Shown here piece by piece: positions 15,001 through 22,402 of a stretch of 64,000 nucleotides of DNA (positions within the stretch are counted from its first letter, which is position 1; every line of letters begins with the position of its first letter). Both the position numbers and the translations under genes were made by a program. A model generated the notes under the pieces. It did not search any database. It saw only the letters and a list, made by a program, of their open reading frames with translations, and was not told where the DNA came from. Origin of the DNA: Obrimoposthia wandeli (Eukaryota); contig CDROCS010000372.1 in NCBI GenBank assembly GCA_977020255.1, forward strand, positions 496,001 through 560,000. The letters run 5' to 3'.

Positions 15001-15077
15001 TGTCATTCCTGCGTAGGCAGGAATCTATTTTTAATTTAACGATATAATTATGGATTCCTGTCTTTGCAGGAATGACA
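15001..15077. repeat. Dimeric GTCATTCCTGC...GCAGGAATC REP/MITE, copy 1
   Basis: TGTCATTCCTGCGTAGGCAGGAATC-spacer-GGATTCCTGTCTTTGCAGGAATGACA. Confidence 0.9.
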
Positions 15078-15659: not shown

Positions 15660-15777
15660 GCGTTCCCTAAAGGTCGGGCTTTTTGCTATATCTTTTTATT
15701 TGTTCTCGATACATTTTTCAAAAAAAAGAAAAATACTCGAACTGACATAAAAAGGATGTCGCTTCAATCCCTAACGC
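15660..15777. repeat. GCGTT...AACGC MITE-like element carrying an inner TCGAG element (15702..15747)
   Basis: Reverse complement of the elements at 32983 and 40866. Confidence 0.8.
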
Positions 15778-15791
15778 AAGATTCGTTAAAT

Positions 15792-16573: not shown

Positions 16574-16650
16574 TGTCATTCCTGCGAAGGCAGGAATCTA
16601 TTTTTATTTTGTTGTCTTGCTTATGGATTCCTGCCTGCGCAGGAATGACA
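16574..16650. repeat. Dimeric GTCATTCC REP/MITE, copy 2
   Basis: TGTCATTCCTGCGAAGGCAGGAATC...GGATTCCTGCCTGCGCAGGAATGACA. Confidence 0.9.
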
Positions 16651-16877: not shown

Positions 16878-16956
16878 TGTCATTCCTGCATAGGCAGGAA
16901 TCTATTTTTAATTTTGTTTTATTTTTATTTGGATTCCTGCCTTCGCAGGAATGACA
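16878..16956. repeat. Dimeric GTCATTCC REP/MITE, copy 3
   Basis: TGTCATTCCTGCATAGGCAGGAATC...GGATTCCTGCCTTCGCAGGAATGACA. Confidence 0.9.
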
Positions 16957-16957
16957 A

Positions 16958-18397
16958 CTAATACTTTATACAAATATTTTTAGGTTCAGTAAAAAAACGT
17001 AATGCTTCAAAACCACCTTCACGTCCAACTCCACTTTCTTTTTGTCCACCAAAAGGTGTTCGTAAATCCCTAATCATCCATGTATTAACCCAAACAATTC
17101 CGCTATGTAATTGTTTAGAAAATTGCATAGTTCTATTTAGGTTGTTTGTCCATAAGGTAGCTGATAATCCGTATTTTACGTCATTTGCTAATTGCAATGC
17201 TTCTTCATCCGTTTTAAAAGGCATAATAGTTACAACAGGTCCAAAAATTTCTTCTTGATTCAATCTGCATTGATTGCTTTCTACTTCTATAATTGTTGGT
17301 TGTAAATAATAACCATTTTCACTTCCTTTTACCTCAACTTTATTTCCGCCGAAAAGGATTTTTCCGCCTTCATCTTCTGCAATATCAATATAACTTTTTA
17401 CTTTCTCTAAATGTTGTTTTGAAACTAATGCTCCTATATTTGTGTCACTTTTAGCTGGATTCCCAACTTTTAATTGAGATACTTTTTCAGCAAAATCTTT
17501 CTTAAATTTATCATAGATTTTTTCTTCTACAAAAATTCTACTTCCGCATAAACAAATTTGACCTTGATTTGCAAACGAAGAGCGAACCGTAGTTTCTAAC
17601 ATTTTATCATAATCGCAATCTGCAAAAATGATATTCGGATTTTTACCTCCTAATTCCAACGATAATTTCTTAAACATTGGTGCAGCAACTCGCGCAATAT
17701 GCGCGCCTGTTGTTGTTCCTCCTGTAAAAGATATTGCTTTAATCTTTTTATGTTCAACAATTGCTTGTCCTGTTGATGTTCCTAATCCGTGAACAATATT
17801 CAACACTCCTTTTGGAAGGCCAGCTTCTGTACAAATCTCGCCTAATAAATAGGCTGTCATTGGTGTAACTTCACTTGGTTTTGCAATAACGCAATTTCCT
17901 GCGGCGATTGCTGGAGCAATTTTCCATGTGAATAAATACAACGGTAAATTCCACGGAGAAATACAACCCACAACACCAATTGGTTGACGCAATGTAAAAT
18001 TAACAGCATTTAAACCAACACTTTCATGTGCTTCTGATGAAAACTGTGTAATTGCATTTGCAAAAAATTGAAAGTTTGCTGCTGCTCTTGGAATATCTAT
18101 TTGCGTTGCTAAACTTACCGGTTTTCCGTTGTCTTTACTTTCTGCTTCTGCTAAAAAAGTTAATTTTTCTTTTATTAAATCTGCAATTTTAGACAAGATT
18201 TTACTTCTTTCTTCTAAAGTTGTGTTAGACCATTTTGGAAAAGCTTTTTCTGCAGCTTCAACTGCTTTTTCTACATCTTCTTTTGTTGAGTTTGGTATTT
18301 GTCCGTAAACTTCTCCTTTTGATGGATTGTAATTATCTATGTAATTACCCAAAATTGGATTTACAAATTCGCCGTTGATGTAGTTTTGAATTTTCAT
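16958..18397 (-). CDS. Aldehyde dehydrogenase, likely 2-aminomuconate-6-semialdehyde dehydrogenase
   Basis: ISPWNLPL, FTGGT, LELGGKNP, GQICLC and EEIFGP motifs; cluster context. Confidence 0.85.
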   Translation of the reverse strand: MKIQNYINGEFVNPILGNYIDNYNPSKGEVYGQIPNSTKEDVEKAVEAAEKAFPKWSNTTLEERSKILSKIADLIKEKLTFLAEAESKDNGKPVSLATQIDIPRAAANFQFFANAITQFSSEAHESVGLNAVNFTLRQPIGVVGCISPWNLPLYLFTWKIAPAIAAGNCVIAKPSEVTPMTAYLLGEICTEAGLPKGVLNIVHGLGTSTGQAIVEHKKIKAISFTGGTTTGAHIARVAAPMFKKLSLELGGKNPNIIFADCDYDKMLETTVRSSFANQGQICLCGSRIFVEEKIYDKFKKDFAEKVSQLKVGNPAKSDTNIGALVSKQHLEKVKSYIDIAEDEGGKILFGGNKVEVKGSENGYYLQPTIIEVESNQCRLNQEEIFGPVVTIMPFKTDEEALQLANDVKYGLSATLWTNNLNRTMQFSKQLHSGIVWVNTWMIRDLRTPFGGQKESGVGREGGFEALRFFTEPKNICIKY

Positions 18398-18411: not shown

Positions 18412-18444
18412 AGACCTCACAGGTTTTTAAAACCTGTGAGGTCT
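18412..18444. repeat. Perfect 16-bp inverted repeat, REP-like
   Basis: AGACCTCACAGGTTTT-T-AAAACCTGTGAGGTCT. Confidence 0.8.
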
Positions 18445-18447
18445 AAA

Positions 18448-18846
18448 TTATTTCTTTTTATAAGCCGTAACCTTAATCTCTACCACCAAATCTGGATGTG
18501 GTAATTGATGCACAGCAACGGTTGTTCTTGTTGGTCCGGTTTCTTTGTCAAAAAATTCTGCGTATGCTTTATTATAACCTGCAAAATCGTTCATGTTTAC
18601 TAAAAAAGTAGAAACATCTACAACGTCTTTTATACTTGCACCAACAGTTTTTAAATTTTTATCGATGTTTTTTAAAACTTCTCTTGTTTGTGTTTCTACG
18701 TTAAGATATTTTGTTCCCATTTCGTCAATAATATCAACTCCTGCAATGGTATTGTCTGCTCTTCTAGAACTTGTTCCTGACACAAAAATAAAATCTCCCA
18801 CAACTTTTACGTGTGGATATGCGCCTCTTGGTGTTACTTCACTCAT
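18448..18846 (-). CDS. RidA family protein, likely 2-aminomuconate deaminase
   Basis: PRGAYPH, FVSG, N..YAEFF, PTRTTV (conserved Arg) and VEIK motifs; context. Confidence 0.8.
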
Positions 18847-18855
18847 AATATAAAA

Positions 18856-18886
18856 CCCATCCTAACCTTCCTAAAAGGAAGGAACT
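18856..18886 (+). repeat. CC(T/C)A(T/C)CC-AACC-hairpin palindromic element, solo copy
   Basis: CCCATCCTAACCTTCCTAAAAGGAAGGAACT. Confidence 0.75.
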
Positions 18887-18930: not shown

Positions 18931-18998
18931 TGTCATTCCTGCGAAGGCAGGAATCTATTCTTTATTTATTATGGATTCCTGCCTTCGCAGGAATGACA
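18931..18998. repeat. Dimeric GTCATTCC REP/MITE, copy 4
   Basis: TGTCATTCCTGCGAAGGCAGGAATC...GGATTCCTGCCTTCGCAGGAATGACA. Confidence 0.9.
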
Positions 18999-19005
18999 AC
19001 TACAA

Positions 19006-19584
19006 TTAATCTTTGGCCAATTCTAACAGTTTTAATGTTGTTCTTAAATTTCTTGTAGTTGCAATAACATTCAACTTTTTTTCTATGATGTTATTGGTTA
19101 ATTTTGTTTTACCAAAACCTGTTGGACAATTTAAATAAACAACATCATCTACTATTTTATATTTATCTTCTCCAAGATTTTTAATATCAATAGTTGTTTC
19201 TTTTGATACTTTATTTAAAAATGAAAAAGCAACAATTTTTTCATTTTCTATTGAAAAAGAATAGTTCTCAATTACTTTTTTCCATTCAGGAATTGTTCTT
19301 GCTATTACAGGAACGTCATATCCAAATTTAGTAAAAATTCCGTCTTTTATTATTTTACAAATTTCTGATTTCGCTTTTTCTGATTCTAAAATTATATTCC
19401 CACTTTGAATATACGTTTGCACGTTTTGAAACTGTAAATCGTTTAATAATTCACGTAGTTCTGCCATTGGAAGTTTGTTTTTTCCTGACACATTAATTCC
19501 GCGTAATAAAATGATAAAAGCCTCTCCTAACCTCTCCGAAGGAGAGGAACTCATACTCTTGAGCTTAAAATCTATATCTTTCAT
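19006..19584 (-). CDS. DUF1697 domain protein with repeat-derived N-terminal extension
   Basis: ILLRGINVSGKNKLPMAELR, VQTYIQSGN and TTRN motifs. Confidence 0.85.
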   Translation of the reverse strand: MKDIDFKLKSMSSSPSERLGEAFIILLRGINVSGKNKLPMAELRELLNDLQFQNVQTYIQSGNIILESEKAKSEICKIIKDGIFTKFGYDVPVIARTIPEWKKVIENYSFSIENEKIVAFSFLNKVSKETTIDIKNLGEDKYKIVDDVVYLNCPTGFGKTKLTNNIIEKKLNVIATTRNLRTTLKLLELAKD

Positions 19585-19639
19585 TTATTTTTTTCTTCGT
19601 AAACTTACTACTCCTTCCCTTCGGGAAGGTTGGGATGGG
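19521..19639. repeat. Inverted pair of CCxAxCC-AACC palindromic elements (19521..19551 +, 19608..19639 -)
   Basis: CCTCTCCTAACCTCTCCGAAGGAGAGGAACT and the reverse-oriented CCCATCCCAACCTTCCCGAAGGGAAGGAGTAG. Confidence 0.8.
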
Positions 19640-19643
19640 ATTT

Positions 19644-21104
19644 TTACAATCCAGCAATTTTATCTTCCTCTAAAATGTTATTTGTTTCAATTTTTACTAT
19701 TTCTAAAATGACTTTCAATTCGGCTGTCGTCATATTTAAATGTGTATTTACTTTATCGTCTGCAATTAAATTAAGTAAAGCTTTGTCTTGCGCTCTTCCT
19801 TTTTTCATTGCTTCATTATAACCAATATTTTCATTAAAAGTGACTAAAGAATATTTAGAGAAATATTCTTTTGGAAACGTTTTTTCTAAATCCATTTCTA
19901 TCTTTCTTTTTTCTTTAAATAATGGATTTGCAACATGACCTTTCATTTCATGAAAATTATCTAACGCTAAATCTGCAATGGCATCTGTATTTTCTTTTCT
20001 TGCTTTTTCATATGCCTTGAAAACGGTTTTCCAATCACTCAAATTTTGATTTAGAATTTCATCAAGAACAGTTACATCCTCAAATGAAGCATTCATTCCT
20101 TGTCCGTAAAACGGAACAATTGCGTGTGCAGAATCTCCCACTAAAATGGTTTTATTTTTATACGACCATGGCGAACATTTTATAGTTCCTAAAGGTCCTG
20201 TTGGATTGTTTAAAAACTCGGCTGTTATATTCGGAATTAACGCCAACGCATCTGGAAACTCATTCTCAAAAAATGTTGTAATTTTTTCTTCGGAGGTTAA
20301 ATTATTGAAATTATATTCGCCTTCATCATAACTTAAAAATAAAGTTACCGTGAAACTTCCATCCATATTTGGCAATGCAATTAGCATATAATCGCCACGA
20401 GGCCAAATGTGTAAATGACCATCACTAATTTGATGTTTTTCGTTTTTATCCGCAGGAATTTCTAATTCTTTATATCCGTGTGTTAAATAATTTTGAGAAT
20501 AGCTAAACAAGAATTTACGCTCTGAAACGTAACTTTTTCTTAAAATTGAACCTGCACCATCTGTTCCAAAAATAACAGTTGCATCAACAGAAAACTCTTC
20601 TTTGGTTTTATAATCTTTAAAATGAGCTTCTGTGTTTTCAATATCTACTGAAATACATTTTTTATTAAAATGAATGTTTACATTTTCATGTTTTTCTGCT
20701 TCTGTTAATAGAATTCCGTTTAAATCTCCACGAGAAATTGAGTTGATATATTCATTTTCTCTTCCTGAATAATTAGAAGCAAATGTATTTCCTTCTCTAT
20801 CATGCATTAATCGTCCATACATTGGAATGCAAATTTCTCTCGCTTTCTCTTCTACTCCACACAAACGCAAGGCTTTAAATCCACGGTCTGACAATGCTAA
20901 ATTGATTGATCTTCCTGCAGAAATATCTGTAGTTCTTAAATCAGGTCTACTTTCATATACCTCAACTTTATAACCTCTTTGGGCTAGTCTTAATGCTAGT
21001 AAACTTCCGCAAAGTCCAGCTCCAATTATTAGAATCCTATCCCAACCCTTTCCAGAGGAAAGGGCTTTCTTACTCTTATGTAAATTATTATTTTTTAAAT
21101 TCAA
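19644..21104 (-). CDS. kmo: Kynurenine 3-monooxygenase (TTG start)
   Basis: IIGAGLCG, GRSINLALSDRG, LHIWPR, GDSAHAIVPFYGQGMNASFED motifs. Confidence 0.93.
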   Translation of the reverse strand: MNLKNNNLHKSKKALSSGKGWDRILIIGAGLCGSLLALRLAQRGYKVEVYESRPDLRTTDISAGRSINLALSDRGFKALRLCGVEEKAREICIPMYGRLMHDREGNTFASNYSGRENEYINSISRGDLNGILLTEAEKHENVNIHFNKKCISVDIENTEAHFKDYKTKEEFSVDATVIFGTDGAGSILRKSYVSERKFLFSYSQNYLTHGYKELEIPADKNEKHQISDGHLHIWPRGDYMLIALPNMDGSFTVTLFLSYDEGEYNFNNLTSEEKITTFFENEFPDALALIPNITAEFLNNPTGPLGTIKCSPWSYKNKTILVGDSAHAIVPFYGQGMNASFEDVTVLDEILNQNLSDWKTVFKAYEKARKENTDAIADLALDNFHEMKGHVANPLFKEKRKIEMDLEKTFPKEYFSKYSLVTFNENIGYNEAMKKGRAQDKALLNLIADDKVNTHLNMTTAELKVILEIVKIETNNILEEDKIAGL

Positions 21105-21161
21105 AATATTGTTATTTTTCTAAATTAAGCTTCCTTTCCTTCGGAAAGGATTGAGGATAGG
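21036..21161. repeat. Inverted pair of CCxAxCC-AACC palindromic elements (21036..21068 +, 21129..21161 -)
   Basis: CCTATCCCAACCCTTTCCAGAGGAAAGGG and the reverse-oriented CCTATCCTCAATCCTTTCCGAAGGAAAGGAAGC. Confidence 0.8.
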
Positions 21162-22402
21162 ATTTTAACCATTTGATAGACATCCTCAAAACTTGTATAC
21201 ATTGGTACTGGTGCACAACGTATAACATCTGGTTCTCGCCAATCTGTAATAATATTATTTTCTGTTAGCTTTTTATGCAAACTTTTATCGGCGTTTTTTA
21301 CTTGAATAGATAATTGACATCCTCTTTCTTTTGGATTTGAAGGAGTAATGATTTTAATACCATCAGAATTAATTTGATTTATTAAATACTCGAAATAACC
21401 TGTTAGCTTTTCTGATTTTTCACGCAATGCTTCCATTCCAACTTCATCAAATAAATCTAAAGAAGCCTTAATTGCTGCCATTGATAATATTGGCGGATTA
21501 CTTAATTGCCAACCTTCTGCACCTTCCATTACATCAAATGGCTGACGCATATTAAAACGTGTGTCTTTGTTGTGATTCCACCAACCAGCAAAACGTGGTA
21601 ACTCTTTATTTTTTGAATGTTTTTCGTGAACAAATAATCCGCCCAAACTTCCTGGGCCAGAATTTAAATATTTATACGTACACCAAGCTGCAAAATCGAC
21701 CCCTGAATTGTGTAATTCTGGCGAAATATTTCCTGCTCCGTGTGCTAAATCGATTCCGACAATACAGTTTTTTGAATGCCCTATTTCTGCAATTCGTTTT
21801 AAATCTAAATATTGACCAGTATAATAATTTACTCCGCCAATTAATAATAAAGCTATTTCATCTCCTTGTTCAGAAACAATTGTTTCTAAATCTTTAATAT
21901 TTAATAATTCTTCTCCTTTTCTTGGTTTCCATTCAATTACATCATCATCCGAAAATCCGTGAAATTTTAATTGACTTTGCACTGCATATCTATCTGATGG
22001 AAAAGCATCCGACTCAATAACAATTTTATATTTTGTTTTTGTAGGTCTATAAAAAGACACCATTAACAAATGAAGATTTGTTGTAAGTGTATTCATAACC
22101 ACAACTTCAATTGGTTTTGCACCTACAATTTTTGCCAATTTATCCGTTAAAAATTCATGGTAATTTAACCACGGATTCTTTGCTTCAAAATGACCTTCTA
22201 CACCAAGATTTGCCCAATCTTCTAATTCCTGATTGATATATTCTTTGGTTGCTTTTGGTTGTAAACCCAAAGAGTTCCCTGTAAAATATAACCAGTTATT
22301 CCCATTTTTGTCTTTAGGAATATGAAATCGATTTCTTAAATGAGAAAGAGAATCCTCTTTATCTTGCTGTTGTGCGTAGTCTAGATTATTTTGGTATTTC
22401 AT
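21125..22402 (-). CDS. kynU: Kynureninase
   Basis: YFTGNSLGLQP, DLAHGAGN, WCTYKYLNSGPG (PLP Lys) and QLSNPP motifs. Confidence 0.95.
   Translation of the reverse strand: MKYQNNLDYAQQQDKEDSLSHLRNRFHIPKDKNGNNWLYFTGNSLGLQPKATKEYINQELEDWANLGVEGHFEAKNPWLNYHEFLTDKLAKIVGAKPIEVVVMNTLTTNLHLLMVSFYRPTKTKYKIVIESDAFPSDRYAVQSQLKFHGFSDDDVIEWKPRKGEELLNIKDLETIVSEQGDEIALLLIGGVNYYTGQYLDLKRIAEIGHSKNCIVGIDLAHGAGNISPELHNSGVDFAAWCTYKYLNSGPGSLGGLFVHEKHSKNKELPRFAGWWNHNKDTRFNMRQPFDVMEGAEGWQLSNPPILSMAAIKASLDLFDEVGMEALREKSEKLTGYFEYLINQINSDGIKIITPSNPKERGCQLSIQVKNADKSLHKKLTENNIITDWREPDVIRCAPVPMYTSFEDVYQMVKILSSILSEGKEA

Follow-up and report, generated by a model that had tools for sequence, protein, structure and literature searches.

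The intrastrand triplex motifs of Enterobacteria named BoxC or PIT were reportedly described by Hoyne and Maher in 2000. TM_ECO, which consists of a pyrimidine (Y) stem, a loop, a purine (R) stem, TTA and a second R stem, has 23 copies in E. coli K-12, occurs in inverted pairs of two types, has no linked mobile-element gene and lies in surroundings of raised sequence variability; it has been reported only from Proteobacteria, with G/C-rich triplex motifs named in Cyanobacteria too and Bacteroidota unmentioned, and purine-motif triplexes are stated not to form in RNA (Holder et al. 2015, PMC4666352). Here we describe what appears to be a BoxC/TM-like repeat family of Flavobacteriaceae, five units of which lie in the kynurenine (kyn) operon of a 64,000-nt stretch of DNA (the window; positions 496,001 to 560,000, forward strand, of contig CDROCS010000372.1 in the Obrimoposthia wandeli assembly GCA_977020255.1). 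Our reading, to which we assign a probability of roughly 0.65, is that inverted pairs of these units overwrote junctions of the operon and that the units came to be read as protein termini.

An earlier inspection of the window made from its letters alone (the original prediction) had claimed two inverted pairs, and both were recovered in place, spanning 126 nt (D/C) and 119 nt (B/A); its four paired units stand, and a fifth copy, at 18856-18882, had been overlooked. We refer to a pair with its spacer as a cassette, to the kynU/kmo and kmo/DUF1697 junctions as J1 and J2, and to other loci by L numbers. From the upstream end of the operon, the units and spacers are the following.

21132-21161, plus strand: unit D, hairpin at 21132-21150 (pyrimidine arm, loop, purine arm), TTG linker, mirror tail AGGATAGG at 21154-21161; 51.4 bits.
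21065-21131, minus strand: J1 spacer (kynU/kmo), A-rich, containing the kynU stop TAA (21125-21127) and a TTG (21102-21104).
21036-21064, minus strand: unit C, hairpin at 21046-21064, TT linker, mirror tail GGGATAGG at 21036-21043; 46.1 bits.
19613-19639, plus strand: unit B, hairpin at 19613-19629, TTG linker, tail GGATGGG at 19633-19639; 55.6 bits.
19548-19612, minus strand: J2 spacer (kmo/DUF1697), containing ATGs at 19582-19584 and 19552-19554.
19521-19547, minus strand: unit A, hairpin at 19531-19547, TTA linker, tail GGAGAGG at 19521-19527; 53.1 bits.
18856-18882, minus strand: unit E, a single copy, hairpin at 18866-18882, TTA linker, tail GGATGGG; 57.2 bits.

The tail of unit E ends 9 nt upstream of the ridA ATG (18846). 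In the J2 spacer, the ATG at 19582-19584 has an in-frame homolog in the J2 cassette of each of L013, L036 and L072, and that at 19552-19554 falls within the 5' leader of unit A. A covariance model of the unit, built from 23 training copies, scored the window's five, themselves part of that training set, at 46-57 bits (E 1e-12 to 2e-16) and found no further match above 15 bits in the 64 kb. The tail motif occurs eight times against 1.8 expected, a count reached in 0 of 100 shuffles. Both cassettes are spanned, with 0-1 differences, by independent Logan contigs of run X1 (DNA only), and an Rfam scan of 14.5-22.8 kb returned no family over the units at gathering score, the only matches over the cassettes being sub-threshold ones to microRNA precursors.

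In the DNA examined, the model aligned 96 copies. A unit is ~45 nt long: a ~12-nt leader resembling AAGAGTATGAGTT comes first, then a 6-8-nt pyrimidine arm, which a 3-4-nt loop joins to a complementary purine arm, and after a 3-nt linker the unit closes with a purine tail and CTT. In 80 of the 96 copies and in all five window units, the stem was perfect over 5 bp or more and led through a 3-nt linker to a purine tail, with TTA as the linker in 47 of the 80. The tail is a mirror repeat, and not a direct repeat, of the purine arm, a rule obeyed by more than a dozen arm variants (as arm/tail, for example, GGGGAGA/AGAGGGG, GGGAGGA/AGGAGGG and GGAAAGGG/GGGATAGG), and among asymmetric arms the mirror mapping was the better one in 53 cases and the direct mapping in 2. 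With the linker fixed at 3 nt and kinship among copies uncorrected, mean tail-to-mirror identity was 0.887, compared to 0.642 +/- 0.022 when tails were permuted among unique units (0 of 2000 permutations reached the observed value); the direct-repeat mapping was not significant in the same test. The arm-tail correspondences were G.G (272), A.A (112) and T.A (46), allowed triads thus occupying 430 of 481 positions. They coincide exactly with the triads of a purine-motif triple helix, and the units share the class II (purine-motif) intrastrand triplex architecture of BoxC/PIT/TM_ECO. A G-quadruplex formed from purine arm and tail was rejected because it leaves the mirrored A and T positions unexplained. 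Two variants were observed at the orthologous site upstream of ridA, GGGAAGG/GGATGGG in the window, L036 and L005 and GGGGAGA/AGAGGGG in L072, L021, L033, L031 and L025; there, either the three blocks may have changed together or the unit may have been replaced.

The likeness to BoxC/PIT/TM_ECO covers the block order, the 3-nt second loop (TTA in type A), the second purine stem and the tolerance of T opposite A, and also tens of copies per genome, inverted pairs of two different types, variable sequence around the loci and no known linked transposase. By contrast, the TM_ECO sequence pattern (CCCTCNCCC, N3-6, GGGNGAGGG, N3, GGGNGAGGG; 9-nt stems) is not matched by the flavobacterial stems, which are 6-8 nt long and of other sequence (e.g. 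CCTTCCC, CCTCTCC), so that the two share a structural class but not a sequence family, and the hosts are low-GC Flavobacteriaceae rather than Proteobacteria. Moreover, the E. coli arm is mirror-symmetric and cannot, therefore, tell a mirror from a direct repeat, whereas the many asymmetric arm variants of the flavobacterial family can. The two families also differ in placement: flavobacterial tails lie flush with the ends of open reading frames (ORFs) and the units are repeatedly read into protein termini, while in E. coli the copies are without exception intergenic, at distances of 10-310 nt that show no trend.

The genes around the window's units are on the minus strand in the order kynU, kmo, DUF1697, ridA and aldehyde dehydrogenase; their ORFs were called mechanically and their identities come from Pfam and PDB searches. 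The three that meet the cassettes are as follows.

21125-22402, minus strand: kynU (kynureninase), ORF with KYNU_C and Aminotran_5 Pfam matches.
19644-21104, minus strand: kmo (kynurenine 3-monooxygenase), ORF with an FAD_binding_3 match and matches to solved KMO chains in PDB (E 5e-88).
19006-19584, minus strand: DUF1697 gene, ORF with a DUF1697 Pfam match whose profile begins at residue 22.

kynU remains open through unit D as far as the TAA at 21125-21127, with no earlier stop. TTG 21104, which lies 20 nt downstream of that stop and 69 nt before the ILIIGAG motif, is the sole canonical in-frame start of kmo, and DUF1697 has no start ahead of its core other than ATG 19584 and ATG 19554, either of which requires unit A to be read; no canonical start was found downstream of the elements in the kmo and DUF1697 ORFs. 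ORF analysis thus confirmed the starts that the original prediction had named as the only ones available, and they and the kynU stop do lie in the spacers, as it had held. Read on the minus strand, unit D encodes the KynU C-terminus (K)ILSSILSEGK, unit C encodes ALSSGKGWDR immediately N-terminal to ILIIGAG of KMO, and unit A encodes SSPSERLGE(A) ahead of the DUF1697 core FIILLRGINV. The further proposal that the elements are translated therefore holds for these three and fails for unit B, since the kmo stop (19644-19646) is 4 nt outside its tail. By ORF logic, units D, C and A would be translated and unit B would not, and KynU, KMO and DUF1697 are predicted to carry repeat-encoded terminal peptides. 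In KynU, the last 13 residues after ..MV derive from the cassette (7 in relatives); KMO has a 23-residue N-terminal extension from the TTG, where relatives have 6 residues from an ATG; and the N-terminal extension of DUF1697, unit A included, is of 21 (or 11) residues.

We compared the window with 80 Polaribacter and Tenacibaculum loci, giving 81 operons in the junction survey. In 68 of the 74 kmo loci without a J1 cassette, an ATG exactly 18 nt before ILIIGAG was found, reading MNKKDN-ILIIGAG, and in the 43 cassette-free loci with kynU directly upstream the kmo ATG comes right after the kynU stop or within a few nt of it. KynU ends 7 residues past ..MV in 35 of these 43, its tail after ..MV being 7-10 residues long without a cassette and 13-21 with one. 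DUF1697 starts 6 codons before the LLRGIN core in 46 of 48 loci (MKxYIV-LLRGIN), usually as TAA-ATG. Homologs of the J1 cassette were identified at the kynU/kmo junction of five relatives (L015, L021, L036, L072 and L005, the last with homology over only the kmo-proximal half), in all of which the sole in-frame kmo start is a TTG 75 nt upstream (-75); kynU in these relatives continues through unit D for 13-21 residues, and the distance from kynU stop to kmo TTG in J1 cassettes ranges from -4 to 20 nt. Homologs of the J2 cassette occupy the kmo/DUF1697 junction of three relatives (L013, L036 and L072), each with an in-frame spacer ATG ten or eleven codons ahead of the unit and a product reading M-x9-x-SSP-x3-LGxA and then the core. 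The window's ORFs are intact and 77-91% identical to the relatives' proteins, and across diverged cassettes frame and start codons are kept and length differences amount to whole codons, which looks like the behaviour of coding sequence. The peptides are absent from orthologs lacking the DNA element, and the comparison upholds the original prediction that the elements took over the translation junctions. The Bacteroidota -7 box (TAnnTTTG), looked for by eye in the J1 spacers, was present only in L015.

Units were found at one or more junctions in 14 of the 81 operons (kynU/kmo, kmo/DUF1697 or kmo/next gene, DUF1697/ridA and further downstream). On a quick KMO tree the cassette bearers are scattered, requiring 13 changes for 14 bearers, and bearers showed no clustering relative to shuffles; at least 9 of the changes are forced by well-supported branches, which speaks against a single cassette origin. 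One bearer, Tenacibaculum sp. A30 (L072), is nested in a tight clade of cassette-free species, and its operon is near-identical to that of T. aestuarii (L046), so that filled and empty junctions could be compared directly. At J1, the A30 cassette replaces 44 nt: kynU has lost its six final codons and its stop, the next 5 nt are gone, and kmo has lost six of the seven codons preceding IVIIGAG (MIKQEN), start included. At J2 it replaces 9 nt (the ATG and two codons), and a further cassette, at J3, replaces the intergenic region, DUF1697 thereby ending within a unit. No target duplication was seen at A30 J1-J3 relative to T. aestuarii, the flanks being native up to the boundaries. Homologous cassettes in equal frames occupy equal junctions in scattered Polaribacter and Tenacibaculum species and, because J1 and J2 cassettes can be aligned over their spacers across genera, each junction allele had either one origin with lateral movement or recurrent hits of the site by one cassette. 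The kyn-operon junctions are replacement hot spots. In a metagenomic relative (run X3 contig), 657 and 121 unrelated letters lie exactly between 21031-21167 and 19516-19755, and the J1 spacer of L005 (L005:186-590) holds ~400 extra nt with a small ORF. An association with RAYT/IS200-like elements was rejected, given that PF01797, the Y1 transposase, was matched in only one (G002) of three element-rich genomes, the two without a match, G001 and G003, having at least 17 and at least 14 copies of the unit respectively.

The family extends well beyond these operons. It was matched in 35 of 121 sampled Flavobacteriaceae genomes, with at least 1-42 copies per genome; copy numbers are lower bounds, 50-150 candidates having been scored per genome (50 in the 121-genome survey). 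At least 20, 34, 16, 5 and 4 matches (E <=1) were obtained in the genomes of L072, L036, L015, L013 and L007 respectively, three relatives having at least 14-34 copies per genome, and the window's contig carries at least four copies besides the five. The kyn operon holds 5 of at least 9 copies on that contig, 6 of ~30 in P. porphyrae, 5 of ~17 in Tenacibaculum sp. A30 and two of the three strong matches in T. insulae, and is thus strongly over-represented among unit sites.

Pairing and placement follow strict patterns. Among the 96 copies, 56 form 28 pairs with tails always outward and 40 are single, and inward or tandem pairs and insertions inside an ORF were both absent. In 29 copies an ORF of 80 aa or more starts 3-11 nt past the tail (modal gap 3 nt, typically GGG-CTT-ATG), and in 30 an opposite-strand ORF has its stop codon 0-11 nt past the tail. 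Measured from single units to the closest ORF of 100 aa or more, the median distance was 3 nt at the tail and 75.5 nt at the hairpin, the tail being the nearer of the two in 30 of 38. Coding ends are overlapped by ~30 of the 96: ORFs end at a TAA made by the linker in ~10 copies, read through the whole unit in ~10 (kynU at J1; DUF1697 at J3 in L072, L033 and L036) and include it at the N-terminus in ~11, among them that of a HemN-like radical-SAM protein of Tenacibaculum sp. A30. A genome-wide search for in-frame copies, suggested along with the original prediction, turned up further units read in frame outside the kyn operon, as in this HemN-like protein, and partial translation appears to be a general property of the family rather than a peculiarity of that operon. 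Stops in all three frames of the unit were discarded as a cause of the flush ORF ends, since 14 of 96 copies are closed in all three antisense frames compared to 18% expected from mononucleotide shuffles. N-terminal reading in the same frame as in DUF1697 was observed at L082 (G001:C1:1280821-1280943) and L087 (G002:C1:55488-55535), the respective products being the HemN-like radical-SAM protein, with …SSSPSGRLGGA… before CxxxCxxC, and a 575-aa ORF with …SSSPLEKSGEA…. At L112 (G000:C361:1204626-1204674) a 230-aa ORF starts at the ATG within the tail GGATGGG, so that the T of the tail can serve in a start codon too.

Three other kinds of repeat invite comparison. Like the Rickettsia palindromic elements (RPEs), which are read in frame within unrelated metabolic enzymes and tolerated there (PMC10969869), the flavobacterial units are read in frame in enzymes, as the analogy drawn in the original prediction requires, but that analogy holds only loosely: RPEs are ~100-150 bp long, lie inside ORFs and encode a family-specific peptide, whereas the units belong to another (triplex-type) family, are ~45 nt long, sit where genes meet, affect terminal residues only (by addition or replacement) and introduce new stop and start codons, and no sequence relation between the two was found. 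With REP, BIME and REPIN sequences the units share the form of short extragenic palindromes near gene ends, often in inverted doublets, and REPs lying <=15 nt from a stop codon affect translation (PMC12306157). They differ in having no GTAG/CGTC tag and a mirror tail instead of a simple palindrome, and from REPINs with their RAYT in that partners are unmatched and the Y1 transposase is missing from two of the three element-rich genomes; REPIN-like matched partners were rejected on the equality of cognate and non-cognate duplex energies (see below). A whole pair, at ~120 bp with terminal inverted repeats, a long hairpin and sub-threshold microRNA-precursor matches, resembles a miniature inverted-repeat transposable element (MITE), from which it differs in lacking a target-site duplication, in replacing native sequence at the filled site (L072 versus L046), in spacers that are unrelated between loci and in the commonness of single units.

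We propose that units of a BoxC/TM-like family settle singly or as outward-tailed pairs, with the tail side against an ORF start or stop. The comparisons above show that in the kyn operon two pair-cassettes replaced ancestral stop-then-ATG junctions, removing the native starts and a few terminal codons, and the cassette spacers would now supply the kynU stop, the kmo TTG and the DUF1697 ATG. The genes would remain open because the spacer provides this stop and these starts, and it is their use that would cause units D, C and A to be read as protein termini, the encoded peptides presumably being tolerated appendages. Translational coupling is probably retained, since the kynU stop stays within -4 to 20 nt of the kmo TTG inside the spacer. 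The family may be kept or propagated through a DNA-level fold of the single unit, a hairpin with a third strand, and would spread as junctions are replaced, through recombination or allele exchange, and not by cut-and-paste transposition. Several points weigh against this proposal. There is no linked transposase and PF01797 is missing from two element-rich genomes, so that the proposal does not settle the mechanism of spread; triplex formation is deduced from sequence covariation, and relatedness among copies inflates the permutation statistics; none of the RNA runs in which the locus was looked for contains it; and the strict polarity of tails towards ORFs, together with conservation at orthologous sites across genera, could fit a selected cis-regulatory role equally well.

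Such a role, in which the units would be selected punctuation of the mRNA, is on balance unlikely. A hairpin after a stop would hinder termination or 3' decay and a hairpin with purine tail before a start would tune initiation, so that the kyn cassettes would, with the same low probability, determine how much of kynU, kmo and DUF1697 is produced relative to one another. Consistent with this, ribosomes reportedly stall at E. coli REPs <=15 nt from a stop codon (PMC12306157). Polarity is strong, with ~60 of the 96 copies placing the tail against a start (modal gap 3 nt) or a stop (0-11 nt). Units have been kept at orthologous positions in different genera, as they have ahead of ridA and of an FAH-like gene, and purine tails such as GGAGGGG stand at Shine-Dalgarno distance. 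Nonetheless, many tails (GGATAGG, AGATGGG) match the Shine-Dalgarno sequence poorly, Shine-Dalgarno sequences are rarely used by Bacteroidota, and the units are missing from very close relatives. A purine-motif triplex, a structure reported not to form in RNA (PMC4666352), moreover fits the mirror-tail rule and its T opposite A.

The original prediction had instead envisaged a coupling switch, in which pair partners form a long-range duplex on the mRNA that hides the spacer stop and start until a ribosome on the upstream gene melts it and switches on downstream translation. In the window this is physically reasonable: under folding models of Watson-Crick pairing only, the long-range fold is the minimum-energy structure at J1 (-53.2 kcal/mol, z -7.9, against -28.4 kcal/mol for local hairpins only) and J2 (-40.8 kcal/mol), the gain over local-only folding being 25 and 7 kcal/mol; the kmo TTG is paired within the J1 fold; unit D lies within kynU, so that a translating ribosome must open its hairpin; and the long-range fold recurs in L015 J1, L072 J1 and L036 J2. 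It is not conserved among relatives, however, since L036 J1, L072 J3 and L013 J2 fold as local hairpins instead and L021 J1 folds no better than shuffles (z -0.83). Furthermore, pair partners are mostly of different variants and are unmatched: across the 28 pairs, cognate complementarity was -35.0 kcal/mol compared to -35.4 kcal/mol for non-cognate partners, and 3059 of 5000 permutations equalled or undercut the cognate value. Units also occur as 40 singles and beside the stops of opposite-strand ORFs, and the feature that covaries, the mirror tail, has no role in such a duplex. Selection thus seems visible within units and not between partners, and a switch, possible in the window but unsupported as a selected function, is distinctly unlikely as an account of the elements.

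Annotation artefact or decay, with genes inactive or started at non-canonical downstream codons and the peptides never made, is very improbable. In its favour, the evidence of translation is indirect, TTG is a weak start and unit C is followed by ATT and ATA codons. Against it, the intact ORFs share 77-91% identity with those of relatives, the frame through units and spacer start is kept across diverged cassettes whose lengths differ by whole codons, and the distance between kynU stop and TTG is held to -4 to 20 nt.

The source assembly (1.35 Gb in 6912 contigs) includes several bacteria, and the window sits on a flavobacterial contig of 1.7 Mb. The KMO encoded there shares 91% identity with its Tenacibaculum aquimarinum counterpart and 90% with the KMO of an uncultured Polaribacter, and the operon's host is a marine flavobacterium. 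Other flavobacterial contigs of the assembly (G000: C336, C361, C665, C124, C493, C1827 and more) carry the unit family too, implying several hosts of it in the sample. A Flavo-1 RNA (RF01705) match at window 15668-15782 on the minus strand (49 bits, gathering score 42) was found upstream of the kynurenine cluster. The two remaining genes of the operon are listed here.

18448-18846, minus strand: ridA, ORF with a Ribonuc_L-PSP Pfam match.
16958-18397, minus strand: aldehyde dehydrogenase, ORF with an Aldedh Pfam match.

Two more repeat families were observed in the kyn cluster. One is palindromic (GTCATTCCTGC, a 4-nt loop, GCAGGAATC) and is present in other junctions of the cluster as one single copy and three inverted pairs (window 15005-15024, 16578-16646, 16882-16952 and 18935-18994), with sub-threshold microRNA-precursor matches in Rfam. 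The other is a terminator-like hairpin with a 15-bp stem between ridA and aldehyde dehydrogenase (window 18412-18444), which is also found at the kynU/kmo or kmo/DUF1697 junction in L013, L024, L041, L056, L028, L019, L030 and L076. With all three families combined, every junction of the window's operon holds some palindromic repeat.

Intrastrand triplex repeats of the BoxC/TM type have gone without an assigned function in the decades since they were recognised in E. coli, and their near-identical, symmetric copies gave no comparative evidence of a triplex. The asymmetric flavobacterial variants, whose three blocks change together, supply evidence of that kind, and they come with behaviours undescribed for the class, namely a strict orientation of tails to ORF ends, the repeated replacement of stop/start junctions and the recruitment of a repeat into the termini of KMO, kynureninase, DUF1697 and a HemN-like protein. 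We suggest, tentatively and at odds that we regard as well below even, that triplex-folding junction cassettes overwrite gene boundaries with their own stop and start, remodel the flanking termini and re-set operon coupling, with the kyn operon as a recurrent target. If this doubtful but possible view is right, the covariation of arms and mirror tail would be the first comparative evidence of a bacterial intrastrand DNA triple helix under selection. Close cultured relatives with and without cassettes, such as Tenacibaculum sp. A30 and T. aestuarii, make the effects on translation, coupling and genome stability testable.

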